From positions 171,306,001-171,370,000 of the forward strand of contig OZ038378.1 in the NCBI GenBank assembly GCA_964036045.1: a stretch of 64,000 nucleotides of DNA, written 5' to 3'. Source of the stretch: Eutreptiella sp. 'Long Island Sound 2002'. Taxonomy: Eukaryota > Protista > Euglenida. Within the stretch, counting starts at the first letter, position 1. Every line of letters begins with the position of its first letter. Of this stretch, positions 1 to 41,200 are shown one piece after another. Both the position numbers and the translations under genes were made by a program. A model generated the notes under the pieces. The model was not told the origin of the DNA and searched no databases. It worked only from the letters and a program-made list of their open reading frames with translations.

Positions 1-1729
1 ATGTGAGCCCCTCTGCACCTGTGGAACTACTGCATATGACACACAATTACCTCTGGTGTATCGATCGAATATCTCCGGATCATCCGGGAGAGTGTACGCC
101 ATTAGCACACGTCACTCCTTCACATGAGCCCTAAGCATTGTTGCAGATTTGTATCACATCAAACATTGACACAATCAGGTGGTGTTTGATAATCATTTGC
201 TCAGGCAGTCCTCAACCAAAATATCATCATCCGAATCTCATGCATCGAGCCGTAGACCAACAGATTGCAATGAACCAACACGGATGTTGAACGATCAATG
301 GAAAACAGGTTTGCAACCCCTTCAGCAGTGCAACGCATCCCCATCGCTGAAAACAACTGCCAGAGGTTCGGCGTGGTAGTGCGTAATGGCATTATCAGGT
401 GGTATTTTATAATCAGGATGTCAATAGTCCTCAACCAAGATTTCATCATCTGCACACCATCACTCGACTCCTGCACCAAGCACCTCAAAGCATACAATGT
501 CACAGCATATGACATCAATCCTAAAATGTGAGCCCCTCTGCACCTGCTGAACTACTGCATATGACACAGAAACACCTCTGGTGTATCGATCGAATATCTC
601 CGGATCATCCGGGAGAGTGTACGCCATTAGCACACGTCACTCCTTCACATGAGCCCTAAGCATTGTTGCAGATTCGTATCACATCAAACATTGACACAAT
701 CAGGTGGTGTTTGATAATCAGTTGCTCAGGCAGTCCTCAACCAAAATATCATCATCCGAATCTCATGCATCGAGCCGTAGACCAACAGATTGCAATGAAC
801 CAACACGGATGTTGAACGATCAATGAAAAAACAGGTTTGCAACCCCTTCAGCAGTGCAAAGCATCCCAATCGCTGAAAACAACTGCCAGAGGTTCGGCAT
901 GGTAGTGCGTAATGGCATTATCAGGTGGTATTTTATAATCAGGATGTCAATAGTCCTCAACCAAGATTTCATCATCTGCACACCATCACTCGACTCCTGC
1001 ACCAAGCACCTCAAAGCATACAATGTCACAGCATATGACATCAATCCTAAAATGTGAGCCCCTCTGCACCTGTGGAACTACTGCACATGACACAGAGAAA
1101 CACCCATTGCGTACAATGCAAAGAGCGAATATCTCCGGATCATCCGGAAGAGTGTACGCCATTAGCACACGTCACTCCTTCACATGAGCCCTAAGCATTG
1201 TTGCAGATTTGTATCACATCAAACATTGACACAATCAGGTGGTGTTTGATAATCATTTGCTCAGGCAGTCCTCAACCAAAATATCATCATCCGAATCTCA
1301 TGCATCGAGCCGTAGACCAACAGATTGCAATGAACCAACACGGATGTTGAACGATCAATGGAAAACAGGTTTGCAACCCCTTCAGCAGTGCAACGCATCC
1401 CCATCGCTGAAAACAACTGCCACAGGTTCGGCATGGTAGTGCGTAATGGCATTATCAGGTGGTATTTTATAATCAGGATGTCAATAGTCCTCAACCAAGA
1501 TTTCATCATCTGCACACCATCACTCGACTCCTGCACCAAGCACCTCAAAGCATACAATGTCACAGCATATGACATCAATCCTAAAATGTGAGCCCCTCTG
1601 CACCTGTGAAACTACTGCACATGACACAGAAACACTCATTGCGTACAATGCAAAGATCGAATATCTCCGGATCATCCGGAAGAGTGTACGCCATTAGCAC
1701 ACGTCACTCCTTCACATGAGCTCTAAGCA

Positions 1730-2759
1730 CACCCTTAAAATAAACACTGGCCCGAGGCTTTTCGGCCAGCGGCCAGTAGACTGTAAATTGTTGTAAATTT
1801 TGTTGTAAATTCCACCTTTTTTTGAGAGAAATCCAAAAAAAATTGTACCTTTTTACTTGTTTTATGCATCCTTCTTCCTACCCATTCCCCAAATGCTTCA
1901 TAAGACACAATTAGTCATTCATGCATATGACCTAGACACCACTAACACCACTCTGCTTGAATGCTGTTTTTTTACAACTCTGGACGTGTGCTGTTTATTC
2001 CGCATCGTCACATGAACATCACTGCTTATTTTTTTCACAACTCTGGATGGGTGCTGTTTATTCCTTATGGTGATTTGGTCTTCACTTTTTAAATTTTTAC
2101 AACTCTGGATGGGTGCTGGTTATTTCTGATTGTTAACTGGTCATCCCTGTTGTTATTTTTTTACAACTCTGCATTGGTGCTGTTTATTCCTGATTCTCAC
2201 ATGTCGACCGTTGTTTATTTTTTCACAACTTTGCATGGGTGCTGTTTGTTTCTCATTGTCATCTGGACATCCATGTTTGTTTTTTTTACAACTCTGGATG
2301 GGTGCTGTTTACTCCTAATTGTCACGTGGCCATCGCTGTTTATTTTTTTTCAACTCCGGATGGGTGCTGTTTTGTGTTGATACCAACGTTGTTGTGCCAC
2401 CAAGTTTGGGGAGGAGGCCACCCCTGTCACCAACCCTCTTCTACCCCCAAGCTTTGCTCTTAACCATTCTCCTATGCATAGATTACCCTACCTCACCACG
2501 CGCGGGAAACTTGCCTGGACAACCATGTATGAATGGCAACAATGTGAACAGAATGACAAAAAGCACGCAACTTGCAAGACAAAGAAGGTCAATTCCATCA
2601 TGAAATGGTGCAAAAATAGCAATTTACACCAATTTACACCGAATTTACACCTATATACACTGCGGTGGCCCAAAAACTGGCCGGTTTCGTAAAATTTACG
2701 CATTTACGCGTAAATTTGCCATTCGGCCAGCGACCCGGCCAGCGTTTAATTCATGGGTG
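1730..2759. mobile_element. 1030-bp non-autonomous TIR element (MITE, hAT/P-like 8-bp TSD) inserted in the array
   Basis: TSD TCTAAGCA at 1722-1729 and 2760-2767. Imperfect 23-bp TIRs CACCCTTAAAATAAACACTGGCC / GGCCAGCGTTTAATTCATGGGTG. Subterminal GTAAAT and ATTTAC repeats and an internal ~63-bp repeat x7. No transposase ORF. A 6-bp TSD reading (CTAAGC) is also possible. Confidence 0.85.
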
Positions 2760-5700
2760 TCTAAGCATTGTTGCAGATTCGTATCACATCAAACATTGAC
2801 ACAATCAGGTGGTGTTTGATAATCATTTGCTCAGGCAGTCCTCAACCAAAATATCATCATCCGAATCTCATGCATCGAGCCGTAGACCAACAGATTGCAA
2901 TGAACCAACACGGATGTTCAAGGATCAATGAAAAAACAGGTTTGCAACCCCTTCAGCAGTGCAAAGAATCCCAATCGCTGAAACCAACTGCCACAGGTTC
3001 GGCGTGGCAGTGCGTAATGGCATTATCAGGTGGTATTTTATAATCAGGATGTCAATAGTCCTCAACCAAGATTTCATCACCTGCACTCCTCCACGAAAGC
3101 GCGCCTTGGGAGACGGCAGATTCTGATTTCCGGACAGTTGCTGCGACACTGCACCCCAAAGCCCCAATCCCGAAAGTGACATGATGACATGATGGATGTC
3201 AGACACAAGCACATGACAATATCAGGTGGTATTTCATAATCAGGATGTCAATAGTCCTCAACCAAGATTTCATCATCTGCACACCATCACTCGACTCCTG
3301 CACCAAGCACCTCAAAGCATACAATGTCACAGCATATGACATCAATCCTAAAATGTGAGCCCCTCTGCACCTGCTGAACTACTGCACATGACACAGAGTA
3401 ACACCCATTGCGTACAATGCAAAGATCGAATATCTCCGGATCATCCGGAAGAGTGTACGCCATTAGCACACGTCACTCCTTCACATGAGCCCTAAGCATT
3501 GTTGCAGATTCGTATCACATCAAACATTGACACAATCAGGTGGTGTTTGATAATCATTTGCTCAGGCAGTCCTCAACCAAAATATCACCATCCGAATCTC
3601 ATGCATCAAGCCGTAGACCAACAGATTGCAATGAACCAACACGGATGTTCAAGGATCAATGAAAAACAGGTTTGCAACCCCTTCAGCAGTGCAACGCATC
3701 CCCATCGCTGAAAACAACTGCCACAGGTTCGGCGTGGTAGTGCGTAATGGCATTATCAGGTGGTATTTTATAATCAGGATGTCAATAGTCCTCAACCAAG
3801 GTTTCATCATCTGCACACCATCACTCGACTCCTGCACCAAGCACCTCAAAGCATACAATGTCACAGCATATGACATCAATCCTAAAATGTGAGCCCCTCT
3901 GCACCTGAGAAACTACTGCACATGACACAGAGTAACACCCATTGCGTACAATGCAAAGATCGAATATCTCCGGATCATCCGGAAGAGTGTACGCCATTAG
4001 CACACGTCACTCCTTCACATGAGCCCTAAGCATTGTTGCAGATTCGTATCACATCAAACATTGACACAATCAGGTGGTGTTTGATAATCATTTGCTCAGG
4101 CAGTCCTCAACCAAAATATCCATCCGAATCTCATGCATCGAGCCGTAGACCAACAGATTGCAATGAACCAACACGGATGTTGAAGGATCAATGAAAAACA
4201 GGTTTGCAACCCCTTCAGCAGTGCAACGCATCCCAATCGCTGAAAACAACTGCCACAGGTTCGGCGTGGTAGTGCGTAATGGCATTATCAGGTGGTATTT
4301 TATAATCAGGATGTCAATAGTCCTCAACCAAGATTTCATCATCTGCACACCATCACTCGACTCCTGCACCAAGCACCTCAAAGCATACAATGTCACAGCA
4401 TATGACATCAATCCTAAAATGTGAGCCCCTCTGCACCTGCTGAACTACTGCACATGACACAGAAACATCCATTGCGTACAATGCAAAGATCGAATATCTC
4501 CGGATCATCCGGGAGGGTGTACGCCATTAGCACACGTCACTCCTTCACATGAGCCCTAAGCATTGTTGCAGATTTGTATCACATCAAACATTGACACAAT
4601 CAGGTGGTGTTTGATAATCATTTGCTCAGGCAGTCCTCAACCAAAATATCATCATCCGAATCTCATGCATCGAGCCGTAGACCAGCAGATTGCAATGAAC
4701 CAACACGGATGTTGAAGGATCAATGGAAAACAGGTTTGCAACCCCTTCAGCAGTGCAACGCATCCCAATCGCTGAAAACCACTGCCACAGGTTCGGCATG
4801 GTAGTGCGTAATGGCATTATCAGGTGGTATTTTATAATCAGGATGTCAATAGTCCTCAACCAAGATTTCGTCATCTGCATACCATCACTCGACTCCTGCA
4901 CCAAGCACCTCAAAGCATACAATGTCACAGCATATGACATCAATCCTAAAATGTGAGCCCCTCTGCACCTGAGAAACTACTGCACATGACACAAAGAAAC
5001 ACCCATTGCGTACAATGCAAAGAGCGTATATCTCCGGATCATCCGGCAAAATTTACGCCAATAGCACACGTCACTCCTTCACATGAGCTCTAAGCATTGT
5101 TGCAGATTCGTATCACATCAAACATTGACACAATCAGGTGGTGTTTGATAATCATTTGCTCAGGCAGTCCTCAACCAAAATATCATCATCCGAATCTCAT
5201 GCATCGAGCCGTAGACCAACAGATTGCAATGAACCAACACGGATGTTGAAGGATCAATGAAAAAACAGGTTTGCAACCCCTTCAGCAGTGCAATGCATCC
5301 CCATCGCTGCAGCCAAATGCCACAGGTTCGGCGTGGTAGTGCGTAATGGCATTATCAGGTGGTATTTTATAATCAGGATGTCAATAGTCCTCAACCAAGA
5401 TTTCATCATCTGCACACCATCACTCGACTCCTGCACCAAGCACCTCAAAGCATACAATGTCACAGCATATGACATCAATCCTAAAATGTGAGCCCCTCTG
5501 CACCTGCTGAACTACTGCACATGACACAGAGTAACACCCATTGCGTACAATGCAAAGATCGAATATCTCCGGATCATCCGGGAGGGTGTACGCCATTAGC
5601 ACACGTCACTCCTTCACATGAGCCCTAAGCATTGTTGCAGATTCGTATCACATCAAACATTGACACAATCAGGTGGTGTTTGATAATCATTTGCTCAGGC

Positions 5701-7805
5701 AGTCCTCAACCAAAATATCATCATCCGAATCTCATGCATCGAGCCGTAGACCAACAGATTGCAATGAACCAACACGGATGTTGAAGGATCAATGAAAAAG
5801 CAGGTTTGCAACCCCTTCAGCAGTGCAACGCATCCCAATCGCTGAAAACAACTGCCACAGGTTCGGCGTGGTAGTGCGTAATGGCATTATCAGGTGGTAT
5901 TTTATAATCAGGATGTCAATAGTCCTCAACCAAGATTTCATCATCTGCACACCATCACTCGACTCCTGCACCAAGCACCTCAAAGCATACAATGTCACAG
6001 CATATGACATCAATCCTAAAATGTGAGCCCCTCTGCACCTGTGAAACTACTGCACATGACACAGAGTAACACCCATTGCGTACAATGCAAAGAGCGAATA
6101 TCTCCGGATCATCCGGAAGAGTGTACGCCATTAGCACACGTCACTCCTTCACATGAGCCCTAAGCATTGTTGCAGATTTGTATCACATCAAACATTGACA
6201 CAATCAGGTGGTGTTTGATAATCATTTGCTCAGGCAGTCCTCAACCAAAATATCATCATCCGAATCTCATGCATCGAGCCGTAGACCAGCAGATTGCAAT
6301 GAACCAACACGGATGTTGAAGGATCAATGGAAAACAGGTTTGCAACCCCTTCAGCAGTGCAACGCATCCCAATCGCTGAAAACCACTGCCACAGGTTCGG
6401 CATGGTAGTGCGTAATGGCATTATCAGGTGGTATTTTATAATCAGGATGTCAATAGTCCTCAACCAAGATTTGTCATCTGCATACCATCACTCGACTCCT
6501 GCACCAAGCACCTCAAAGCATACAATGTCACAGCATATGACATCAATCCTAAAATGTGAGCCCCTCTGCACCTGAGAAACTACTGCACATGACACAAAGA
6601 AACACTCATTGCGTACAATGCAAAGAGCGTATATCTCCGGATCATCCGGCAAAATTTACGCCAATAGCACACGTCACTCCTTCACATGAGCTCTAAGCAT
6701 TGTTGCAGATTCGTATCACATCAAACATTGACACAATCAGGTGGTGTTTGATAATCATTTGCTCAGGCAGTCCTCAACCAAAATATCATCATCCGAATCT
6801 CATGCATCGAGCCGTAGACCAACAGATTGCAATGAACCAACACGGATGTTGAAGGATCAATGAAAAAACAGGTTTGCAACCCCTTCAGCAGTGCAATGCA
6901 TCCCCATCGCTGCAGCCAAATGCCACAGGTTCGGCGTGGTAGTGCGTAATGGCATTATCAGGTGGTATTTTATAATCAGGATGTCAATAGTCCTCAACCA
7001 AGATTTCATCATCTGCACACCATCACTCGACTCCTGCACCAAGCACCTCAAAGCATACAATGTCACAGCATATGACATCAATCCTAAAATGTGAGCCCCT
7101 CTGCACCTGCTGAACTACTGCACATGACACAGAGTAACACCCATTGCGTACAATGCAAAGATCGAATATCTCCGGATCATCCGGGAGGGTGTACGCCATT
7201 AGCACACGTCACTCCTTCACATGAGCCCTAAGCATTGTTGCAGATTCGTATCACATCAAACATTGACACAATCAGGTGGTGTTTGATAATCATTTGCTCA
7301 GGCAGTCCTCAACCAAAATATCATCATCCGAATCTCATGCATCGAGCCGTAGACCAACAGATTGCAATGAACCAACACGGATGTTCAAGGATCAATGAAA
7401 AACAGGTTTGCAACCCCTTCAGCAGTGCAACGCATCCCAATCGCTGAAAACAACTGCCACAGGTTCGGCGTGGTAGTGCGTAATGGCATTATCAGGTGGT
7501 ATTTTATAATCAGGATGTCAATAGTCCTCAACCAAGATTTCATCATCTGCACACCATCACTCGACTCCTGCACCAAGCACCTCAAAGCATACAATGTCAC
7601 AGCATATGACATCAATCCTAAAATGTGAGCCCCTCTGCACCTGTGAAACTACTGCACATGACACAGAGTAACACCCATTGCGTACAATGCAAAGAGCGAA
7701 TATCTCCGGATCATCCGGAAGAGTGTACGCCATTAGCACACGTCACTCCTTCACATGAGCCCTAAGCATTGTTGCAGATTCGTATCACATCAAACATTGA
7801 CACAA

Positions 7806-7861
7806 TCAGGTGGTGTTTGATAATCATTTGCTCAGGCAGTCCTCAACCAAAATATCATCAT
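7806..7861 (-). ncRNA. Representative box C/D snoRNA-like cassette A (also 175-230, etc.)
   Basis: ATGATGA tattttggttgaggactgc CTGA gcaa ATGATTA tcaaacaccac CTGA (56 nt). Confidence 0.72.
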
Positions 7862-8025
7862 CCGAATCTCATGCATCGAGCCGTAGACCAGCAGATTGCA
7901 ATGAACCAACACGGATGTTGAAGGATCAATGGAAAACAGGTTTGCAACCCCTTCAGCAGTGCAACGCATCCCAATCGCTGAAAACAACTGCCACAGGTTC
8001 GGCATGGTAGTGCGTAATGGCATTA

Positions 8026-8080
8026 TCAGGTGGTATTTTATAATCAGGATGTCAATAGTCCTCAACCAAGATTTCATCAT
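8026..8080 (-). ncRNA. Representative box C/D snoRNA-like cassette B (also 395-449, etc.)
   Basis: ATGATGA aatcttggttgaggacta TTGA catc CTGATTA taaaataccac CTGA (55 nt). Confidence 0.68.
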
Positions 8081-11000
8081 CTGCACACCATCACTCGACT
8101 CCTGCACCAAGCACCTCAAAGCATACAATGTCACAGCATATGACATCAATCCTAAAATGTGAGCCCCTCTGCACCTGTGAAACTACTGCACATGACACAG
8201 AGTAACACCCATTGCGTACGATGCAAAGAGCGAATATCTCCGGATCATCCGGGAGAGTGTACGCCATTAGCACACGTCACTCCTTCACATGAGCCCTAAG
8301 CATTGTTGCAGATTTGTATCACATCAAACATTGACACAATCAGGTGGTGTTTGATAATCATTTGCTCAGGCAGTCCTCAACCAAAATATCATCATCCGAA
8401 TCTCATGCATCGAGCCGTAGACCAGCAGATTGCAATGAACCAACACGGATGTTGAAGGATCAATGGAAAACAGGTTTGCAACCCCTTCAGCAGTGCAACG
8501 CATCCCAATCGCTGAAAACCACTGCCACAGGTTCGGCGTGGTAGTGCGTAATGGCATTATCAGGTGGTATTTTATAATCAGGATGTCAATAGTCCTCAAC
8601 CAAGATTTCATCATCTGCACACCATCACTCGACTCCTGCACCAAGCACCTCAAAGCATACAATGTCACAGCATATGACATCAATCCTAAAATGTGAGCCC
8701 CTCTGCACCTGTGGAACTACTGCACATGACACAGAGTAACACCCATTGCGTACAATGCAAAGATCGAATATCTCCAGATCATCCGGAAGAGTGTACGCCA
8801 TTAGCACACGTCACTCCTTCACATGAGCCCTAAGCATTGTTGCAGATTTGTATCACATCAAACATTGGCACAATCAGGTGGTGTTTGATAATGATTTGCT
8901 CAGGCAGTCCTCAACCAAAATATCATCATCCGAATCTCATGCATCGAGCCGTAGACCAACAGATTGCAATGAACCAACACGGATGTTGAAGGATCAATGA
9001 AAAAACAGGTTTGCAACCCCTTCAGCAGTGCAATGCATCCCAATCGCTGAAAACAACTGCCACAGGTTCGGCGTGGCAGTGCGTAATGGCATTATCAGGT
9101 GGTATTTTATAATCAGGATGTCAATAGTCCTCAACCAAGATTTCATCATCTGCACACCATCACTCGACTCCTGCACCAAGCACCTCAAAGCATACAATGT
9201 CACAGCATATGACAGCAATCCTAAAATGTGAGCCCCTCTGCACCTGCTGAACTACTGCATATGACACAGAAAAACCTCTGGTGTATCGATCGAATATCTC
9301 CGGATCATCCGGGAGAGTGTACGCCATTAGCACACGTCACTCCTTCACATGAGCCCTAAGCATTGTTGCAGATTTGTATCACATCAAACATTGACACAAT
9401 CAGGTGGTGTTTGATAATCATTTGCTCAGGCAGTCCTCAACCAACATATCATCATCCGAATCTCATGCATCGAGCCGTAGACCAGCAGATTGCAATGAAC
9501 CAACACGGATGTTGAAGGATCAACGGAAAACAGGTTTGCAACCCCTTCAGCAGTGCAACGCATCCCCATCGCTGAAACCAAATGCCACAGGTTCGGCATG
9601 GTAGTGCGTAATGGCATTATCAGGTGGTATTTTGTAATCAGGATGTCAATAGTCCTCAACCAAGATTTCATCATCTGCACACCATCACTCGACTCCTGCA
9701 CCAAGCACCTCAAAGCATACAATGTCACAGCATATGACATCAATCCTAAAATGTGAGCCCCTCTGCACCTGAGAAACTACTGCACATGACACAGAAACAC
9801 TCATTGCCTACAATGCAAAGATCGAATATCTCCGGATCATCCGGCAAAGTTTACGCCATTAGCACACGTCACTCCTTCACATGAGCTCTAAGCATTGTTG
9901 CAGATTCGTATCACATCAAACATTGACACAATCAGGTGGTGTTTGATAATCATTTGCTCAGGCAGTCCTCAACCAAAATATCATCATCCGAATCTCATGC
10001 ATCGAGCCGTAGACCAACAGATTGCAATGAACCAATACGGATGTTGAAGGATCAATGAAAAAACAGGTTTGCAACCCCTTCAGCAGTGCAATGCATCCCA
10101 ATCGCTGAAAACAACTGCCACAGGTTCGGCATGGTAGTGCGTAATGGCATTATCAGGTGGTATTTTATAATCAGGATGTCAATAGTCCTCAACCAAGATT
10201 TCATCATCTGCACACCATCACTCGACTCCTGCACCAAGCACCTCAAAGCATACAATGTCACAGCATATGACATCAATCCTAAAATGTGAGCCCCTCTGCA
10301 CCTGCAGAACTACTGCAAATGACACAGAGTAACACCCATTGCGTACAATGCAAAGATCGAATATCTCCGGATCATCCGGGAGAGTGTACGCCATTAGCAC
10401 ACGTCACTCCTTCACATGAGCCCTAAGCATTGTTGCAGATTCGTATCACATCAAACATTGACACAATCAGGTGGTGTTTGATAATCATTTGCTCAGGCAG
10501 TCCTCAACCAACATATCATCATCCGAATCTCATGCATCGAGCCGTAGACCAACAGATTGCAATGAACCAACACGGATGTTGAAGGATCAATGAAAAAACA
10601 GGTTTGCAACCCCTTCAGCAGTGCAACGCATCCCCATCGCTGAAAACCACTGCCACAGGTTCGGCGTGGTAGTGCGTAATGGCATTATCAGGTGGTATTT
10701 TATAATCACGATGTCAATAGTCCTCAACCAAGATTTCATCATCTTCACACCATCACTCGACTCCTGCACCAAGCACCTCAAAGCATACAATGTCACAGCA
10801 TATGACATCAATCCTAAAATGTGAGCCCCTCTGCACCTGTGAAACTACTGCATATGACACACAGTAACACCTCTGGTGTATCGATTGAATATCTCCGGAT
10901 CATCCGGAAGAGTGTACGCCATTAGCACACGTCACTCCTTCACATGAGCCCTAAGCATTGTTGCAGATTCGTATCACATCAAACATTGACACAATCAGGT

Positions 11001-12378
11001 GGTGTTTGATAATCAGTTGCTCAGGCAGTCCTCAACCAACATATCATCATCCGAATCTCATGCATCGAGCCGTAGACCAACAGATTGCAATGAACCAACA
11101 CGGATGTTGAACGATCAATGAAAAAACAGGTTTGCAACCCCTTCAGCAGTGCAACGCATCCCAATCGCTGAAACCAAATGCCACAGGTTCGGCGTGGCAG
11201 TGCGTAATGGCATTATCAGGTGGTATTTTATAATCAGGATGTCAATAGTCCTCAACCAAGATTTCATCATCTTCACACCATCACTCGACTCCTGCACCAA
11301 GCACCTCAAAGCATACAATGTCACAGCATATGACATCAATCCTAAAATGTGAGCCCCTCTGCACCTGTGGAACTACTGCATATGACAGTGAAACACCTCT
11401 GGTGTATCGATCGAATATCTCCGGATCATCCGGAAGAGTGTACGCCATTAGCACACGTCACTCCTTCACATGAGCCCTAAGCATTGTTGCAGATTCGTAT
11501 CACATCAAACATTGACACAATCAGGTGGTGTTTGATAATCATTTGCTCAGGCAGTCCTCAACCAAAATATCATCATCCGAATCTCATGCATCGAGCCGTA
11601 GACCAACAGATTGCAATGAACCAACACGGATGTTGAAGGATCAATGAAAAAACAGGTTTGCAACCCCTTCAGCAGTGCAAAGCATCCCAATCGCTGAAAC
11701 CAAATGCCACAGGTTCGGCGTGGCAGTGCGTAATGGCATTATCAGGTGGTATTTTATAATCAGGATGTCAATAGTCCTCAACCAAGATTTCATCATCTGC
11801 ACACCATCACTCGACTCCTGCACCAAGCACCTCAAAGCATACAATGTCACAGCATATGACATCAATCCTAAAATGTGAGCCCCTCTGCACCTGCTGAATT
11901 ACTGCACATGACACAGAGTAACACCCATTGCGTACAATGCAAAGGTCGAATATCTCCGGATCATCCGGAAGAGTGTACGCCATTAGCACACGTCACTCCT
12001 TCACATGAGCTCTAGGCATTGTTGCAGATTCGTATCACATCAAACATTGACACAATCACGTGGTGTTTGATAATCATTTGCTCAGGCAGTCCTCAACCAA
12101 CATCTCATAATGGACATGATGCCAATCCCCTGCCGTAAATCATGGACTCCTTGATGTCTGTTGTCAGAAACCCCCTTGCGAATCTTGTGAACATCAGTCG
12201 AGTCCACCAATTGTGTCCAGATGATGAAATCATGGTCCGGTTTGTACAGCAGTTCTTGAACGCAAGACGCTGCAGGTTGGGTTGCAAAAGGTTACTGATT
12301 CTGGACTACTTCCCAGCTTGTGATCAAATCCTCCTCCCTCCCTCGCCCCAGCAAAAACATGCTGCCAATGGCACATAC

Positions 12379-12522
12379 CGTCGCTTGAATGGCCTTGTCA
12401 TACCAAGCCTTGTCTTCTGCAACATTCAGCTTGTCGCTGAACACACGGCAGCATTCATGTTTCCAGAGATTAGTCAGCATCGCAGGGTCAGTCACCATGT
12501 CTTTGTGGGACATCATGATCCC
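12379..12522 (-). CDS. ODA2: Dynein HC exon w24 (last exon in window)
   Basis: tgcag|GIMMSH...[14 protein letters not shown]...AIQAT|gtatgt; 144 nt; the next intron runs off the left end of the window. Confidence 0.91.
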
Positions 12523-15500
12523 CTGCATCAAATGCATGCAACATTGTAAGGGGCTGGTCTGAGTGCCACACAATACGTACTGGAAAACAGGCATGCTGCA
12601 CCCGACAAGTGGCACCCCATGATAGTTTGTGTTTTCGCAACCGCATCTTGGGGAAGAGGGTCCACAAAGGATGGTAGGTCACCGTGTATTACAGCTGGTG
12701 CCCAGTGCAATGTCTTTTGTATGACAGTGTGTGGCAGTGTGTGTTGTCCATGGGGGCTGGGGAGTCAACACAGCCCCTATGACCCTGCATCTCCACGTCC
12801 CTGTGGTACCCGCAGAAAAAGATGGCAGGAGAATTTTTTTCATTCTGATATTTTGACTGTGGGGGTAAAATCTTCTTTTACCATTCACCAAAATTGCAAA
12901 ATAGCAGGGCATGCCAACAGACAGACAACTGAATCAGCAAAGGCACCTGGATAACCACAATCTTTCCAACACAAAATAAAATAGGTGCGTAACTGCGGGC
13001 CTAATACTCATATTTGAATTCTCCATTCAAATCTGAGCATTTTGGGTATAAACACATTGGGTGCAAAAAAAAAAAACCGCCTACCCTGTCCACAGCCACA
13101 GGAGCCGAAAAAATTTTCAGGGCACCGTTGGCACCTAAACTGGTTGCTCCCCATTGTACAATGCAAAACAAAATGGGTAGGTAGGTGCAAGCCCATTACT
13201 CATACTTAAATTCTCCGTTCAAATCTGAGCATTTTGGAAAGATAAACATTGGATTGAAAAAGTGTTCTGCCCTTGTCCACAGAGCAAGGAAAAATTCTGG
13301 GCCCCGCTGGCGCCCAGATGGTTGTTCCCATTGTTGTTGTTGGGGGGGGGGGGGGGCTTGGAATCCGCGGCCTGACACATAAGCCCCCCCATGGACATTA
13401 GAGGAAGGGCAGAGTAAACCCGAAGGCGGAGTAAACCCGGTGCAAAGCCCTGAACAGCAGGGCCTTTTGGGAGGGCATGGTAATGGTGTCCGGTGCAAGC
13501 ACCTTCGGCGTGAAACACCGGAGGCACTGGGTGTTTCCAGGAGCACTGGGATTTTTCGTGCTAGTGGGCGCCCCGGTCCCCTATCTGTCCCCCCTTGGGC
13601 CCTAGCATAGTCACCCATCGATGAGGTGCCTCTCGGGGCGTAGCCCGGGGTATTCCCCCCCGCCTCCCCCACCTCAGTCCCCACACTGGGACCCAGGAGG
13701 GAGGGAGGGAGGCAGGGAAAGGGGATGGAGAGGAGAGGAATCTACAATGTGGGGCCGGGTGAGAGTTGGGGGGGGCACCCTGCCCATGCCCCTGCACCCC
13801 AGGCTACCCCTGCAGGCCACGTCCTGGAAGACACCTCAACTACAGGTGACTCAACTGTGTCATGCGAGTCTGCATGACAGTCATGCACCTAATTGGTTGC
13901 ATGGTCTGTCACCCAGGGATGGCCCCGCTTAAAGCACAAAGCCCTTCCCTTCCCTACCTGACCCCCCTTTCTCCCCCTCACCACCCTCCATATCCAGTCC
14001 AGTCAGGGAGGGGGCGGGGGGGGGGGGGGGTGGCTGGGTGGCTCGGTAAGAGTGCTAGTTGTAGGCCTGTGAGCTCACTACCACTGTACTCACCAACTCA
14101 CCACCAGAGCCCGGGAAAACAGGCAGAATGGGGGAAATGGGGTGGAAATGAGAGAAGACAGGGTGAAATGGGAGGAAATGGCCAAATGAAGTATTGTAAA
14201 CAGAGAACAAATAAAACAACTGATGGTTAAATTTTCGGGAAATAAGGGAAAATGAGGGGGAAGTGGGTGAAAATTTCTCAATTTCCCCTCAGTTTTCCGC
14301 ATCTCCCCCCCCCCAAATGTCCACCCCGCTGTTGCCTGATTGAAAAACTGCTGACCACCACTCACCGACGGAAAAACGGGAAAAATGTGAACTCACCACA
14401 CTCAGAGAAAAATCGATGAGGTTACATCCCTGTACTTGGTGCTTCCCAGCGGGGGAGGGGGGGGGGCGGGTAAAGGCTGGTATTCGCGGTTCAACACGTG
14501 GGGCATAGAGGCCCCCAAATCTGCGGCCATGCAGTTCGTGTCGTCCTGGGGGGCTCTAAAGGGCCTGGTCAAGGGAGCCGCTGTTTTTTTTTGGTGTGTG
14601 TGGGGGGGGGGGGGGGGGCGTCTGGCCAAGGGCCTCTAAACCTCGCCCCCCCCCCCTTCATAAGCGAAAGTCCGGGAGCTTCTGTCCCCCTGTCATGAAG
14701 CCACATTTCTGTGCCCAGAAGCGCCTGGATCTCTGCGCTGTATGGGTCGTGAGTGGCTTGAGTGGGGGCATCACCTGTGAAATTCGTGACAGATCCCGCA
14801 CGTTGAAAGTGTAGTGGAACTTGGCAGGAGTGGGCAGCATCTTGGCCTGGATTTTCTTCCAGAAATTGATGGTGGTGCTGGTGATCTTCTCTGCAAGAGC
14901 TTGCACCTAAATGAAAACATGGTTTACAGCAATAAGAAGCGCAACGGGGAAAGTGGGTATGGGTGCCATAATTGCTGAGTAAGTATGAGGGGGGGGGGGG
15001 GGGGGGGCTGGAAATGCCAAAACGGCACCTGTCCCAGGGGCAGGTCCGTGTTGCCACGGCATGAATTGCAAGAAACGATGAATGATGCAAGCATATTTCA
15101 GCAAACGAGGGACAAACGGAGAAAACAAGTGAACAGTAACAATATTTTCAACCTATCTAATGTTCCGATTCCTCCGTGTTTTGGCAATGAATCGGCAAAA
15201 TCCAAGAAACCAACAAATCGGCAGAACAAATCGGCGAAGTCGGCCAAATTCAGCCGCCGATTTGGGGGGGTTGGGGGGGGTGGGGGTGGCACTTCCCCTC
15301 CAACCACCACCCAATGCCCTTGATCTACTGGTCTTGCCTATCCTCACCTCCGTGCATTCCCTTCCTTTCCCTTGGTAGGTTGTGCAAACAGAGCCCGAGG
15401 ACTGTCCCTGTTTCATTGCTCTGTGCCCGGGTCCACACAGAGGAGGGCGATGGCCCTCGCCATTGGCCAGGTGCGTCCAGGCAGATACCCTATACCGGTG

Positions 15501-26425: not shown

Positions 26426-29400
26426 TGGACGGCGCATTGAAGAGGTGCAGGGTGTAGCGCAAGAGAGGGATAGAACACACCCCACAAACCGGAGCACACA
26501 GAACAAAAATGCACAATGGCACAATGCCTAAACATGCTGCGTACCCCAAATGGATATCACTTGGTGATCCGGAACCCCCTGGGCCCTGTTTCCCCCATCC
26601 TTGGCGGTGAGCACCCTCCAAACTTCACTGGCATGGGAATGAGTGACTGCAAAGCATGCTGGCGCCGGCTTGGAAAGGACGCCATGGGGCAGAAGCAGCC
26701 ATTGTTAGTGGAGGGACAAACTGCTCCACTCTCCCCGACTACAAATACGTTTCTCCAAGCAATGTAACAGGACAAGCAATGCAAACCATTATTCCCAAAA
26801 CCTCAAACCATTGCATACGCCCGAAAGTACCAATCAGCACACTATCCCAGCCTTGATGGCATCCACACCCCCCCCCCCCATGCTGGGCGATTTGTGGCCG
26901 CAGAGCGTCGGACTACCTCCGACTGTTAGCAGTTACTCCCTGAAGGTTGCCACTCAATTTTCTGGACGTCAATATCCCAGGGTCTATGAATGAGGCTTGA
27001 CTGAGTCGAAAAATTGGTGATTGAGTGCAACCAGTCGCCCAAAAACCGTCACCGGGCACTGAGTCATGACTGAGTCATGCAATAATGGTGACTGAGATGC
27101 AATATTAAGTCAAGGGTGTATGACGCCCATGACGCACGAGGCTCAGCGGACAGAATGATGACTGCAGTGCACGATGTCCGCTTGTAGCATACTGCCATTA
27201 GCCCATGGGGGGGGGGGGGGCGACTCCGCAAGTCCGAGGACGCCAACTAACCCCCCCCCCCGCTCCTAGGGGGCCTCCACCCAACATTTAGTTGCCAAAG
27301 GTGCCGCCCTCAGGAGTCCATGGGCGCCGAAGGCGTCCGATGCTCTATGGGCACCAAAGGCGCCCGAAGGAAAATTTTGTCCACTTTGCCCCCCAACACT
27401 ATCCTTAAACCCAACCTTAACCCTAACGCCCACCCCAACCCTCAGCCTAGTCCTAACCCTACACCTACCCCTAGCCTTAACCCTGACCCTTACCCTTCCC
27501 CTACCCCCAGCCCCAGGGCCCAGGGGTCCTGCCCCCACCCCGAACCCCAGCCCTCTACTACATCCCTGGAGGGAGGTTACCGACATGGCCTTAGCTGTCG
27601 AAGGATTTTCGCCCTGTTATTGCTACACCCCTCATACGATTGGTTTCTCCCAGATCCTCACCCAGTGCAGCTCACTGGACCTTCCAAGGCTTGGGGACCA
27701 CTGCTTCCGGCTTCCGACTTCCAGCCGTGGCAGGTGTGGCAAACCTCCCCTAGTTCTGCCCGTTCCCGCCCCCCCTGTGCAGATCTCTTGGACCTTCCCC
27801 ATTGGCCCCTGGGTTTACGCTCCTGTTCTGTGGCCCCTGCATGGGTACTGTGTTATTGGGTGCGTTGTGGCAAGTGGCGAACCAATTAAAACGGATTCGG
27901 TTTGCTGGTAGGCCCCTATCCTGTAGACCCCATCCCTTTAGCGCCCCTGAAGAGGCGGTCTCCTGAAGAGGAAATCCGGGTCAAGGTGGGGTCATGGCTT
28001 TCTCACCGCACTGCCTAACTGCAAGGGGGCAGTAGGCACGAGCACCCTTCTACACAGGGGGCATAGTGGGCAGACACTGCCACAGTGCAGGGGCATAACC
28101 GGCAGTGGCATGCTTCAGAAGACTGCCACGTTGAGGGGGGCAGTGAACTGTGGTACCCTTCTGCATGCTGCCACACTGTTGGAAGAGTGTCTAAAGCTGT
28201 TCCAAAAGGGCTCTACAGTGGGGCCTAGATTGTTGTGCACCGTAGTTGTGCATTCCACCAAGTCCCTTCAGTGGGGCCCAGGTAGTTATGTGCTTTCATT
28301 GTTTGTTCCACCAGGGCCCGGCACCGGGGGGATGGGGGGGTGTCCTATCAAGATTTACAACTAGGATCGAGCTGGGTCCTTATCGTTCTCTTGAACCTGG
28401 TTGAAAATGGCAGATTTTCACCTCAAAATGGACCACTGTATATCACCACGGCATGAGAGACGCCTCGTTGAACACCCATTTGCAATCATTTGATATCCCA
28501 ATCACTGCAGAAGACGAACGGCCCTCATTGGAGAGGCCTACATGACACACTGGTGATTGTCCTCAACTTTCAGGAAAATGGGCCAGACAGCTTAAAATGA
28601 CAGACAACTTGTTTTAGATGATGCGCATTTGCTCTGCTGTCGTTTTGAGCTATTTGGATTCCGATTTTGAGCCACGGTGTCCATACAAATTATTTTGGAT
28701 CGTCTGCTGCTTGCTGCTGCTACTGCTGCTGCTTGCTGCTGTTGCTACTGCTTGCTACTACAATATGTCACTCACCTTGAACCTTAAAATTGGTTGTAAA
28801 ACCTCCACTGGGAAACCCAACTCGGTAAAAAAAGTTGTCATTAACAGAACAACAGACCTGTCCCAATTGGCAACACCCCCTTAGTGTTTGGATGGGTCGC
28901 TCTGCTGGCCTCCATCGGTGGCAAGCTGACAAGCAGACCCAGGTTTGCCCCCCCTGTCTGGGCATCAGCTGTTCCGATCACAGCACACTCTTCCCTTAAG
29001 TGGTGGTGGTGGTGGTGGTGGTGGTATTTATTGTAATCAGTGTTGGCGTTGGCGTTGGTGTTGGCCTGTGTCGTGTTGCATTGGCGTTAGTGTTGAGGTT
29101 TTGCGGTTGGGGCTGTGGTTGGGGTTGAGGTAAGTGTCGACGTCATGCTGCGGTGTGCCAGAACGGCATGCAATGGACAACAGGTGTGGCGACCTGCCGC
29201 ACAATCTCATTCGTAATCTGGTCCCCCCACTCATTGATCTCTGGCATGTTCAGGTCGTCGACAAAGAGGCACATCTTCATGTTCCGCTTGGGGCCGTATG
29301 TCGTGCCCATCCGCTTCTCGATCACGTCCTCAACCACATTCTGGAAGAGCCCGGGCGTTGTCGCCGATGAAAAATTGGACTTTTTCCAGGTGAAGAGGTC

Positions 29401-32400
29401 GTTCTCAGGCTTGGCTGCCCAATTTGTGAGGAACTGCTCGATGGTGACGGTCTTGGCCGTGCCCGAGCCGCCCATCAGCAGCACCGCACGCTTTTGGATG
29501 GCATTGCACTCCATGAGGTAGAGCAGGCGCGAGGAGTCGAGGGTGGAGATGAACAGGGTGGAGAACTCCAGCTTATCATCGCCGGGGTACTTCCAGGGGG
29601 GGATGGACTGGTTCCAATGCATCCATTGCCCGGTCTTGAGGTCTACACGGTACTCAAAGATCGTGTCCTGTAGGAACGCGGTGGGTTGGCCCGGCGACAT
29701 GAACAATTGCACTGGGGGAACAGTAGTAGACAGGAGTTGGGTGGAGGAGAGGGCGCTCTGCTGTTTTCAACAGCAGCCAGGCGGGCTGGCAACCGCACAG
29801 GACACACATCTGCGGCACCAGCAACACCAGTCCGTTCTTCTCGCGCTGTCTCTTATTGTCGTGCTTATTCTCACGCTTTCAGGGCCCCACACGAGGCCGG
29901 CGCACACCCCCGGGGACAGCACAGCGGAAGGCGGATCCAAACGCAGCCCGGCAGAGCTGAGCTCTTGTCTATCCAGCCCGGGTCTGGGCCACCGGAGGGG
30001 GATAGCTTCAGGGAAAAGGGCTCCGAACGGGCTGTACAGGCAGTTGACAAAGCGGTTATCGCTGAGCAGGACAGCGGTGTGAGGCAGTATTGGCGGTTAC
30101 GAATGCGTTCGGCAGCATCCGTTGTGGCGCGCTTGATCGGGCTTTGTAGAAGAAGCCCCTCCAGTGTGCTGGCGCTGGATGCTCAGCGGTACCGCGCATG
30201 GGCTGCTCGCTGCACATCTCATACGACCTGCGTTGCTTGTTCTTGGGTCTTGTTTTGACACGGGCTTGTGGGCAAGGAATCGCTCTGAAGCCCCGCCCAC
30301 CACATCCAGCGTCGCAGGCCATTGCTCTTGGCCAGTTGGGTTCACATCCCCTGTGCCTTTGACGAACTCATGACTCTTGCAAACCGCATGACTCAGACCG
30401 GCCCTGCCACATGAACACACCTCCTGAGGTAAATCGGTCAAGAAGTTCCGCAGGTATGTGCTGAAGCGATCACGGCACATGGTCTCCAACATCCCACCGG
30501 CCGACCACGAGTAAACAAACCAGAACATGCGTTCCACCGCCTCCTTGGACAGCTCTATGCCCTTTTCCGCTGCCTCGTTCACGATGCCACACAGCAGCCA
30601 GAAAGAGTTGGAGATCACGTGGTTGAGGCTGTGGAAAGGGCCACCGGGAACGTAAGGGACAGGTCGCAGATGACCCTTGCAACCCCCCGGACGCACTCCA
30701 GGCAAACCAAAACGCCCCGCACGTCTTTTCTTCCACAGGACCACACCTCCGCGTCCCGGACGGATATACGCCAGCCCCACCGCGTGGGCCCGGGATTCAT
30801 CTACGTGGCCCCTGCTCTTGCGCACTATTCAGACATGTTTGGCAAGATGTCACACCGGGGGGCAGGCTGAGCACTGTGGTGCCTGGGTCGTCCCTGAACA
30901 TGTCCATTGCCAAGTTGCCCCGCATCTTTGAGGACCCAGCCTTCACCAAGTCAATATTGGCCGCCACCACAACGGCCGCGGAAACAATCCACTGCAAATG
31001 CCCCCACGGCATGACCGGAACACACTTTGCGGCTCAGTCCTTGTGCCCCCCGCCCAAATAGTCACTAACTATTACCTCCTCTCCGGCGGTAGTCCCTCTG
31101 CTGGCATTTGCTGTGGCGGACTACTGCACTGGGAACACCCATCCAACAGGCGTAAGGGCTCTTGAGGGTGCATTTCCTGTCTGCCCCCGTTCCGCCCCGC
31201 CGATGGGGGTGACCAAGATTCAGCACTCATCTCCAGCCCCCCCATCCCCGACCCACAGCGCCCACGGTCCGGTCACAGGTGCGGGTCGGCAACAAGAGGA
31301 GCATGGGGGCACAGCTTGGGTTTATTAGAAGTATTAGAAGTATTAGAAGAGAGGGAGGGGGGGGGGGTCTAGGACCCAAAAGTTTGTGTATTAATTCATT
31401 AAAATGGCCCGACCAGATTTTCCCGATGCTAAAAAATCTTGTTTTTTCCCACGATGGTCACTTGGGTCTGGGGGGGGGGGGGCTCCTCCTATGGTGTACG
31501 GCCATTCTAATACTTCCCTGGGTGGGGGGCTTGCATCGGAGCCCCGACTTGCACCATTGCCGCTGGTATCTGGCCAAGGAAAATGCAGGTCAATTGTTGA
31601 ACAAAGCGTTAGCCACGTCCTTTTTTTTTTTGGCATACGTTGCGCTTTTTTTTTGGACCAACAAATTTTTTTTTAACTGTAAGCCGCATGCTCTTTTGGG
31701 GGGGGGGGGGTACAAGGGGGGGGGGGGTTGCCAGGGGACAATTTCGACGGGGATAATTTCGATAGGGGGAAAATTTCACCACCTCCGGGAATCTTGAGGC
31801 TTGTTGCCATATACTAGTGGACTCTGGATGATCCCTGTTATTTCTTGGTGGGCTCTCGATGGTTCCTGTTATTCCGGGCACAACCACTGCATGTTGCAAA
31901 CAAAAACATCCCTGGTCCCTTCTCTCTGCTTGGTACACCGCTGTGCATGTCTGAATTCACAGTACTCACCTGTCACACGCTGCAAAAATTTCGCCAGGGG
32001 GAAAATTTTGCCACTTTTCTTAACGGCGAAAATTTCCCCGCGAAATTCTCCCCTCCCGAAATCCCCCCCCCGTGTAGGTGGCATACCGAAAACAGAAAAA
32101 CCCTTTTTCAGAAAAAAAAGATTTACTAGAAAAATCATAAGAACCACCTGACAACCGCCATTGCTACCGGAGGAGGTGAAGCATATACACTCCACGGACA
32201 TTTTGGGTACCTCCAACATGGGCAAAATAACACAGCCATGGAGTGAAGGGAGGTTTTTATACTCATCACTTGAAGATGGCAGAAAGAAAGAAATAATGTT
32301 GGAGCACACCCATATGAGGTGCTCATCATGATTGCAAACAAAAAATGCAATTTGCCCTTTGGCCTTTGGCAAACGGTATCAAATGACTATATTGCTGCCG

Positions 32401-38204: not shown

Positions 38205-38299
<95 letters not shown>

Positions 38300-41200
38300 T
38301 GGGTGGGTGGGTGGGTGTGTGCAGCAACAATCTTTTTCCGACCAATTCAGCATCAGGGGGAGGCACCCTTTCATAGTGGTGTGCCATTAGATATGACGAC
38401 CGAGGCCGCCCGAGACACATCGCCTGTTTTTGAAAGAGGGTGACCATTCACGCAGACTGCACCGGACACCGCAGCGCAAACCTTGTTGGCGCGCCGCCAC
38501 AAATGCGAGAAGATACCGTCGTACCAGTCGCCCGTGGCGTCCATGCGGCCGAACATCTGCGGTGCAGTGATGGCCTTGGGGTTCATGCGGAACTCCTTGT
38601 GGGCGCGCTCCACCTCCGAGAGGGTGCGCAGCAGGGCCTCGTAGCAGCTGCTCTTGCCGGCCCCCGCCGGGCCCACGACCATAATGCCGTGCCGCACCAG
38701 TTTGGTCTCGTACAATTGGATCACTTTGGCGCACCAGTCGTCGTGCAGGATCAGCCCCATGTCTTGCTTCACGACGCGCTCCAGCACCGCCTCGAGCTTG
38801 TCGTACTTGGCCTTGTCAGCGGTCAGGCCCGGGAAGAGATCACCTGCGGAACAAATGGGGCGCGCGCGCGGCAGACCTGAGAATACCCATTCCCTCTCCG
38901 TCCCATTCTGCCCAACGAGGGCAGCCGTGACCTGTCCGCTGCAACACATTCGGTAGTGCGCTTGAGATCGACCCCTGCGCCCTTCGTCGTGCATCCCGGA
39001 CAACATACCCGTCCCCCATGTTGCCTTGAAAATGCAGCGCACCCATGATGGACACCAGTTGGTGGTCCCCTCTCAAATTATCCCGAGCCGTCCTCAGCCG
39101 CCCCAAGCCACTCAAACCCACCCAAAGCCATCCCAAGCCACCCATGCCATCAAGCCACTCCAAGCCACCCCAGTCCACGCAAATCAGACCTCCCACGCTG
39201 CAGCGTTTCCACTATCAACGCCCCGCATTTCGTTTATTCATCGGTTTGCAGGAGTCAAGCACAGTTACCGGTCTCACTTGAAGGCTGACATTGACCCCAT
39301 CGCTGCTCTTGCCTCCTTCTGTTCCATTACTTAAGCGCTCGGGGCTGCAACCTCCTGCATCCAACGCTCCCAAAAAGAGCTGCCCCTCCCCCTTTCACCC
39401 TCAGCACCACGGAAAATTCGCACAACTTGAATACCTGGGATCTCTGGGGTGACTCGATGCTGCGATGGTTTTGTTTCATGCGGCCGTGTGCGAATGGAAT
39501 TCTCCCCAGCAGCCCCCAAAGGCACGCAAAGCATCACACACCCCACACAACGCCCCATACCGAGAAGAGAAATGAACAGCTCAATGTCGTCGAACACGAG
39601 CTTCGACATGTTCATGTCCCGCAGCGTCCGCATGAACAAAAACTCCTCGTCCTTGACCTGCGCCTGCCGCAGTACAGACCCCGCAGACCGGAGCACTGAC
39701 AGAATGTTCCGCAACCCAAAATCATAGTGCCGCTGCTTCGACAGCTGCTGCTCACACAGCCCGTACAGCAGGAAGAACTTCAGACTGATGTCCCCATTCT
39801 TCATGTACCCGGCAGACGCCAGCTTGACCTTCATAATCGCCCGCCGGTCAGGCACCATCATACTGACTCCTCGGAACAGGACCTGCAGGCACACGCACCA
39901 TGAAGCACCAACCAGCCCAACGTACAGCAGCCTGCTGGCTCCCCAACAGCCGGGGGGGAAATTGGTTTTACTGTGTGAGAGTGGGACACGTGTCCCGCTA
40001 CTCACAAATGCTGCTTCTGCCCCCCTTGGCGGCCCTCTCATGCCGGCGCCGGCACGCTCCATACAAAGCCTTTCCCAAGACAGAAATTTGGAGGGTGCCC
40101 ACCACCACCGATGTGGGAAATGCTACACAGGGCCAGGGGGTTCCGGATCACCACGTGACACCCATCAGTGCTGTGCAGCATGCTCAGGCATTTCGCCAGT
40201 TGTTTCGGGGGGTTTCCGCCCGTGCAGTGTGCATTGGGTGTTTCTCCTACCAACGCCCTGCAGTGGGGCCCAGGCGGTGCTGCGCAGCGGGTGTTCGTCC
40301 CCCCAAGGCCCTGTTGTGGCGCCCAGGCAGTGCTTTGTGATGGGTGTTCGTCCTACCTAAGCCCTGCGGTGGGGCCTAGGCAGCGCGCTGCAGTGGGCTG
40401 TGTGTCCCGGGGGTGGGGGGGTCGACCTTCCAAGCTGATACGCCTCGGCGGTATTGGTCGCCAGTGGTGGACTGTGAGGGGCCCCCTTCCAATTCACACT
40501 AATCCATGATCCAACTGCTGGAAAATCTGTGCAAAGCAGTGACAACGCAAAGGAAGGCAGTCCCGAGTGTGCAAACCCATACCTTGAGATTCTCAGGCAG
40601 CTCCTGGCGACCAGCATAGCCAGGGTTCATTGTGATGAAGAAGCCGGTTGTAGGGATGAGCTTGATGAGCTGAACGTAGAGGACAAGTGAGGCGCAATGC
40701 ACCAGGTAGTGGAGGCAAAGCACCGCCATTGTCCCATCTCCCTCAAATTATCCCGAGCCGTCCTCAGCCGCCCCAAGCCACTCAAACCCACCCAAAGCCA
40801 TCCCAAGCCACCCATGCCATCAAGCCACTCCAAGCCACCCCAGTCCACGCAAATCAGACCTCCCACGCTGCAGCGTTTCCACTATCAACGCCCGCATTTT
40901 GTTTATTCATCGGTTTGCAGGAGTCAAGCACAGTTACCGGTCTCATTTGAAGGCTGACATTGACCCCATCGCTGCTCTTGCCTCCTTCTGTTCCATTACT
41001 TGCGCGCTCGGGGCTGCAACCTCCTGCATCCAACGCTCCCAAAAAGAGCTGCCCCTCCCCCTTTCACCCTCAGCACCACGGAAAATTCGCACGACTTGAA
41101 TACCTGGGATCTCTGGGGTGACTCGGTGCTGCGATGGTTTTGTTTCATGCGGCCGTGTGCGAATGGAATTCTCCCCAGCAGCCCCCATGGCACGCAAAAA

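Follow-up and report, generated by a model that had tools for sequence, protein, structure and literature searches.

The window analysed here is a stretch of 64,000 nucleotides from the euglenid Eutreptiella sp. 'Long Island Sound 2002' (contig OZ038378.1, positions 171,306,001 to 171,370,000), and its main features are listed in Table 1. Throughout the window, the minus strand carries open reading frames (ORFs) that are dynein heavy-chain exons, and the first 12,111 nucleotides are occupied by a tandem array of two related cassettes, A and B, each carrying the boxes of a compact small nucleolar RNA (snoRNA) of the C/D class. We describe below the array, the intron that contains it, the case for its being a cluster of snoRNA genes, and the other explanations.

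Organization of the cassette array

A strict pattern, [AG]TGATGA, N10-25, [CT]TGA, N2-8, NTGAT[TG]A, N8-14, CTGA, matches the minus strand of 1-12111 36 times and the plus strand not at all; there are no matches in the remaining 52 kb of the window, and none in 20,000 shuffles of the 534-bp consensus unit. When the 13-nt guide core common to A and B (TTGGTTGAGGACT) is used as an anchor, exactly 21 A and 21 B cassettes are found in 1-12111, as the sequence-only reading (an earlier reading of the window made without database searches) had counted in its ~530-bp units; all are on the minus strand and 36 of the 42 are intact. The spacing alternates between 315 nt from A to B and 220 nt from B to A, giving units of 525-535 bp, and the array was missed by Tandem Repeats Finder because the longest period of that program is 500.

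The A consensus (56 nt) consists of ATGATGA, a 19-nt guide, CTGA, GCAA, ATGATTA, an 11-nt guide and CTGA, and the B consensus (55 nt) of ATGATGA, an 18-nt guide, TTGA, CATC, CTGATTA, an 11-nt guide and CTGA. The order is C-D'-C'-D in both, with 18-19 nt between C and D', 4 nt between D' and C', and 11 nt between C' and D; the D' box is CTGA or TTGA and the C' box is (A/C/G)TGATTA. This is the architecture described in the sequence-only reading, and the variants that it regarded as tolerated, GTGATGA at 3074-3080 and a GTGATTA C' box near 10705, are both present. The damaged copies that it listed (~3535, ~4069, ~6423, ~8875 and 12056-12111) are likewise all real, with one B copy to be added (Table 1). 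A 196-bp partial duplication at 3080-3275 adds an extra B-type cassette, designated B', to this part of the array. A sense-strand stretch suited to an antisense probe for the mature RNA is UUGGUUGAGGACU.

Table 1. Coordinates of the cassette array, its representative and atypical members, and the adjoining dynein exons (window positions)
Feature	Position	Strand	Remarks
In-window part of array	1..12111	-	21 A + 21 B, units ~534 bp; continues ~21 kb past the window start
Representative A cassette	5669..5724	-	56 nt, consensus
A boxes	C 5718-5724, D' 5695-5698, C' 5684-5690, D 5669-5672	-	D' CTGA, C' ATGATTA
A guides and loop	D' guide 5699-5717, loop 5691-5694, D guide 5673-5683	-	
Representative B cassette	5355..5409	-	55 nt, consensus
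B boxes	C 5403-5409, D' 5381-5384, C' 5370-5376, D 5355-5358	-	D' TTGA, C' CTGATTA
B guides and loop	D' guide 5385-5402, loop 5377-5380, D guide 5359-5369	-	
Extra B-type cassette (B')	3026..3080	-	GTGATGA C box, own upstream flank; 196 nt after B 3222-3276
First A copy, degenerate	12056..12111	-	5' edge of array; C box ATTATGA, D box GTGA
Damaged A	3536-3591	-	C box ATGGTGA
Damaged A	4070-4125	-	deletion in C box
Damaged B	4820-4874	-	ATGACGA; absent from the list of the sequence-only reading
Damaged B	6424-6478	-	deletion in C box
Damaged A	8874-8929	-	C' ATCATTA
Insertion in one A-to-B spacer	1730..2767	.	1038 bp, MITE-like (miniature inverted-repeat transposable element)
Unique 5' intron segment	12112..12378	-	267 nt, begins with donor GTATGT
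Dynein exon directly upstream of array intron	12379..12522	-	residues 2752-2791 of PDB 9e5c_7a
Upstream dynein exon ORF, AAA3 region	29146..29712	-	matches PDB 9e5c_7a residues 2448-2608, E = 2e-58

The host gene and the array intron

The best match of the AAA3-region exon is PDB 9e5c_7a, 'Dynein heavy chain, putative', followed by the Chlamydomonas outer-arm gamma chain and human DNAH5, and a second dynein exon gives the same ranking. By these matches the host is an axonemal outer-arm-type dynein heavy-chain gene; the PDB chains named 'Dynein heavy chain, putative', its best matches, we take to be kinetoplastid.

The borders of the intron are provided by RNA contigs from two estuary metatranscriptomes, which match 12376-12525 with 0 mismatches and then continue into sequence that is not adjacent in the genome. 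One of the two continuations is located at 14778-14807, the upstream exon, and the other occurs nowhere in the window. The alignment exceeds the exon by 3 ambiguous nucleotides at each end, and the 3' border of the exon is ACG/GTATGT, with the donor GTATGT at 12378-12373. We note that the ambiguous letters, GTA and CAG, stand on both sides of the join (12376-12378 and 12523-12525, and 14413-14415 of locus L007, see below), and that short direct repeats at intron borders are reported to be very common in Euglena (PMC12501133).

Beyond the window the intron was read on a public 278-kb contig (ERZ25074135:ctg8970_34x_l, 179838-222574, loci L007-L010) reached through ORFs inside the repeat. The four loci of this ENA contig tile 42.7 kb and agree base for base with window positions 1-12700; the contig represents the same strain as the window, or the same data. 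Its gene calls include dozens of spurious 'proteins' of 55-91 residues inside the array. The RNA-derived continuation missing from the window is found here 33.75 kb downstream of the exon, after ...GGTGCAG, where the downstream exon translates to residues 2808-2866 of the same dynein. This distance, together with the border letters, defines a GT-AG intron of 33,754 nt, which in window coordinates extends from 12378 to -21375. Of this length the array takes up 33,098 nt (98%), with unique ends of 267 and 389 nt. The proposal that it lies within one dynein intron is thus confirmed: spliced RNA contigs and consecutive dynein residues on either side place the array in its entirety within one GT-AG intron of conventional type, in sense orientation to dynein. 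The exon upstream of it maps to residues 2752-2791 in a dynein of 4639 residues, so that about 40% of the protein must be encoded beyond the array.

The full array contains 123 cassettes, 58 A and 65 B, none of them on the other strand, arranged in ~58 head-to-tail units of 525-731 bp with two or three cassettes each. This is about three times what the window shows, so that the massively amplified cluster in one intron of a flagellar motor gene is larger than was seen at first. A strict count gives 105 intact cassettes and explicit box criteria give 106 (86%); a C box of ATGATGA or GTGATGA together with a D box of CTGA is present in 106 of the 123, and also in all three consensus sequences (A, B and B'). 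There are seven B-B pairs with a spacing of 196 nt, in each of which the additional member is a B' cassette: it carries GTGATGA, has an upstream flank of its own, and in most copies shows AAAC and GTGATTA as well. Compared with B, the changes in B' are confined to the R of the C box, the first (free) position of C' and the guide's distal part. Variants within the array include TATGTTGG in A and GTGATTA in B.

Relationship of the A and B cassettes

The clearest indication of snoRNA identity comes from comparing A with B. Although 13 of 56 aligned positions differ, none of the differences falls in the 17 critical kink-turn residues (UGAUGA of C, UGA of D', UGAU of C' and CUGA of D; hypergeometric p = 0.004). 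In the first guide all 13 nt of the core are shared, the second guide is identical at 9 of 11 positions, and the D'-C' loop at 0 of 4. The upstream flanks are ~57% identical over 30 nt and random beyond, and the downstream flanks are random past 10 nt. The differences in the pairing regions are U/C in the first guide and C/U in the second, either of which would pair with G. Such a pattern of divergence is expected if selection held the boxes and guide cores while the rest drifted. A search of Rfam at relaxed thresholds reported only box C/D families, on the minus strand (SNORD74, snoZ17 and sR11; E = 0.6-8, 14-18 bits). From this we consider that A and B are most likely real compact methylation-guide snoRNA genes, and they may be RNAs already catalogued in Euglena.

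An external stem joining C and D is predicted to have 10 bp in B (z = -1.56) and to be weak in A (z = -0.47); it is without covariation because the flanks are invariant. An AGA-box pseudouridine guide in the spacers was also considered, with an AGA 5 nt before the C box of A, but the candidate folds no better than shuffles and has no Rfam match, and was rejected.

We also note that the 40 nt upstream of each B (window 976-1015; consensus columns 275-315) are invariant in 50 units. They contain TTGGTGCAGGAGT, which matches the guide core at 10 of 13 positions and is followed by GTGATGG, and look like the remains of a decayed cassette that in part now makes up the external stem of B. Upstream of A there is a weaker counterpart, TTGGTCTACGGCT.

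Guides and predicted targets

The guides adjacent to D' are UAUUUUGGUUGAGGACUGC in A and AAUCUUGGUUGAGGACUA in B, and those adjacent to D are UCAAACACCAC and UAAAAUACCAC, respectively. The D' guides are complementary to a predicted target 5'-AGUCCUCAACCAAG-3', in which the D/D'+5 rule predicts methylation of a U by A and of the next C by B, in the context 5'-AG[U][C]CUCAACCAAG-3'; the shift by one nucleotide arises because GC precedes D' in A and A precedes it in B. Both D guides are complementary to 5'-GUGGUGUUU-3', with the U in 5'-GUGG[U]GUUU-3' as the predicted site.

Several candidates for the target were tried and rejected. First, metagenome contigs were scanned for the complement of the D' guide followed by a conserved helix-69 anchor, giving six hits, all of them chance bacterial matches and none ribosomal RNA (rRNA); the scan was built on a 9-nt match, UCAACCAAG, to yeast 25S rRNA. 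Secondly, likenesses of the target to the 5' end of the large-subunit rRNA and to the SNORD74 target region were judged too loose. Thirdly, complementarity of the guides to the host gene amounts to one wobble-allowed 12-mer at 58522, where about 2 are expected by chance. A scan of a viral collection for both guide targets 25-55 nt apart found none, and in full-text literature searches the guide and target strings turned up only in unrelated primers and tags from crosslinking and immunoprecipitation (CLIP).

Variation among copies

Variation among the copies was scored over 50 regular units. With the spacer as reference class (90 of 414 columns variable), the guides are poor in variants (3 of 51; Fisher p = 0.005), and the boxes, at 14 of 44, are no less variable than the spacer. 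The comparison of boxes with spacer suggested in the sequence-only reading is divided in its outcome, guide positions varying less than the spacer and box positions as much. As a test of function, within-array conservation is in any case confounded by concerted evolution. The units are 97-99% alike and the array is therefore young or homogenised, and when each unit is present ~60 times, hardly any selection should fall on an individual copy. We read the copy variation as neutral turnover around a selected consensus, although the same picture would be given by a snoRNA-seeded satellite in early decay.

Expression

The RNA-library contigs include the spliced dynein message, and also a continuous stretch of the array, 10132-10624, that runs through A, spacer and B. 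Word depth is 3-7 in the array compared to 7-9 in the exon, and the unique intron flank at 12112-12378 has no coverage while the array does, a difference that copy number alone explains. The array contigs fit low-level intron or precursor RNA and carry-over of DNA, with its ~60 unit copies, equally well. Estuary metagenomes and metatranscriptomes carry both the array and the dynein exon in spliced form, without a mismatch, and the same organism or a near-identical strain therefore lives there.

Interpretation of the array

The explanation that we favor, and consider probable, is that the locus is a recently amplified and homogenised array of paralogous compact box C/D snoRNA genes, A and B with B', that fills most of the dynein intron in the sense direction. 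The array would be transcribed within the dynein pre-mRNA, or as a long polycistronic RNA, and fibrillarin, Nop56, Nop58 and Snu13 would assemble on each C/D and C'/D' pair, with endonuclease cuts in the spacers and exonuclease trimming releasing RNAs of ~55-75 nt. The D' guides would then specify 2'-O-methylation at adjacent nucleotides, that of A at the U and that of B at the C, and the D guides of both would direct methylation of one and the same U. The target would most likely be rRNA, as it is for almost every box C/D RNA known from Euglena, and selection would act on the family consensus rather than on single copies.

Several observations weigh against this explanation. No Rfam family reaches its gathering score over the cassettes; to our knowledge Rfam contains no Euglena families, so a missing match says little. 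The guide between C' and D offers just 9-11 bp of possible pairing, and neither the metagenome nor the viral scan returned a target, the organism's own rRNA lying outside the searched data. Among the copies, the box columns vary as much as the spacer, a change that inactivates the C box (ATGGTGA) has spread to five A copies, and some stretches of spacer are as invariant as the guides, especially the 40 nt upstream of B. The depth of the array in the RNA data could be DNA carry-over multiplied by ~60 copies, and no mature small RNA is seen in the RNA runs, which are contigs of long-insert libraries and blind to an RNA of 55-75 nt.

The alternative that survives best, which we regard as rather unlikely, is that these are real snoRNA genes in an array that is transcribed independently and polycistronically, from a promoter upstream of it or in every unit, so that the dynein host is irrelevant to its expression and the sense orientation a coincidence. 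The clusters of Euglena and of trypanosomatids are described as tandem and polycistronic with no host gene stated, a sense orientation has a prior of 50%, and the absence of the unique flank from RNA runs that cover the array would be expected of a separate transcript, but that difference follows from copy number alone. Moreover, the unique intron at the ends of the array is just 267 + 389 nt, the splice signals are intact, and the intron is spliced.

It is improbable, in our judgement, that the array is instead a satellite seeded by snoRNA genes and amplified by neutral unequal crossing-over, with most or all copies being unexpressed or unprocessed relics and the supply of these RNAs coming from elsewhere. 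The failure of box residues to be better kept among copies than spacer, the ~14% of copies with damaged boxes, including the one damaging change shared by five, and the persistence of an inserted transposon are all compatible with such decay; however, the consensus of all three cassette types has perfect boxes, the differences among A, B and B' avoid every critical residue, guide columns are poor in variants, and 86% of copies are intact. That the box-like motifs are a chance feature of the repeated unit with no RNA function is barely credible, for although all copies descend from one or two ancestral sequences and provide few independent observations, the pattern appears in 0 of 20,000 shuffled units and nowhere in the other 52 kb, and two to three diverged paralogues all keep the four boxes in register.

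Returning to the favored array of functional snoRNA genes, we speculate, tentatively and with more doubt than conviction, that euglenids may express amplified snoRNA arrays by parking them in sense orientation in introns of protein-coding genes transcribed by RNA polymerase II (Pol II). If so, one flagellar dynein pre-mRNA would be the precursor for more than 100 guide RNAs per transcript, the transcription of promoter-less arrays would be explained, and the supply of guide RNAs would be tied to an unrelated host gene. In a stranger variant, the two guides may be without an rRNA target, and the array may make orphan C/D RNAs with another role.

Other features of the intron and window

The 1038-bp insertion has imperfect terminal inverted repeats of ~24 bp (ACACCC...GGCC), a 6-bp duplication (GCTTAG), inner inverted repeats with AATTTACA motifs, and a 62-bp tandem repeat of 6.5 copies at 1967-2372. 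It resembles a non-autonomous DNA transposon that has eluded homogenisation.

Repeats of other kinds lie elsewhere in the dynein introns. Between 17669 and 26159, in the next dynein intron or introns, there are five blocks of a 193-200-bp tandem repeat, with 2.8-5.8 copies each that are 85-91% alike, and each block is near long G or GGGTGG runs. Long microsatellites are (GT)58 at 38206-38321 and (TTGTG)34 at 41999-42169. A segment next to a dynein exon is duplicated ~1.67 kb apart (39096-39170 and 40766-40840; 39331-40062 and 40943-41221), and both copies have the same AGCCACCCAA repeat and the same ORF tail, indicating a local duplication inside the gene.

Comparison with known systems

The sequence-only reading had likened the layout to the mammalian SNORD115/116 arrays. 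The analogy holds for copy number, since these (and SNORD113/114) likewise have dozens of near-identical C/D copies on one strand with decayed members among intact ones, but not for layout: the mammalian genes occur as one copy per intron of a repeated non-coding host, whereas here a single splice in a protein-coding gene removes all copies. Nothing at this locus points to imprinting or tissue-specific use.

Intronic snoRNA clusters are established in plants and Chlamydomonas (summarized in PMC7671301; Chen et al. 2008, by title). They too have several sense snoRNA genes in one intron of a Pol II host, presumably released by endo- and exonucleolytic cleavage. The members of such clusters are, as far as is known, a few different snoRNAs in short introns, in contrast to the two paralogues repeated ~60 times here over nearly all of a very long intron. 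Trypanosomatid clusters are also reiterated and polycistronic, in a lineage related to this host as judged by the best PDB matches of the dynein, but they mix C/D and H/ACA-like genes, are not known to have more than few repeats, and occupy intergenic positions, in genomes almost without cis-introns.

The closest known systems are those of Euglena, whose rRNA carries more modifications than any other known and whose snoRNAs number in the hundreds (PMC2784804; PMC6366073). Among these are multi-copy, linked and polycistronic genes with isoforms (PMC2784804), and polycistronic clusters are also reported there by Moore and Russell 2012, as cited in PMC7671301; the repeated polycistronic clusters invoked in the sequence-only reading are thus established. 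In the accounts of the Euglena gracilis clusters cited in these two articles (Russell et al. 2004, 2006; Moore and Russell 2012), several similarities emerge. First, the C/D RNAs are likewise compact, at ~55-60 nt, with well-formed D'/C' boxes. Secondly, several linked genes are present per repeat and the repeats are head-to-tail. Thirdly, there are isoforms with guides shifted to neighbouring nucleotides. The unit described here differs in having box C/D genes only, with no AGA-box guide detected, the comparison being one of descriptions, and in its defined genomic setting, with 123 sense copies in one 33.8-kb intron of a protein-coding gene. The text of the paper on the chromosome-level E. 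gracilis assembly does not mention snoRNAs, nor does that of the paper on nonconventional introns of E. agilis.

The locus provides a fully resolved example, with 123 copies, exact intron borders, a named host, and splicing across the array, and makes it possible to test whether the array rides on the dynein pre-mRNA and how a 34-kb repetitive intron is spliced and diced. A further point, relevant to repeat masking and annotation, is that gene arrays can be among the 'satellites' of this genome. In relation to the systems above, the locus is another instance of the snoRNA amplification documented in Euglena, on a larger scale and with an intron as its host.

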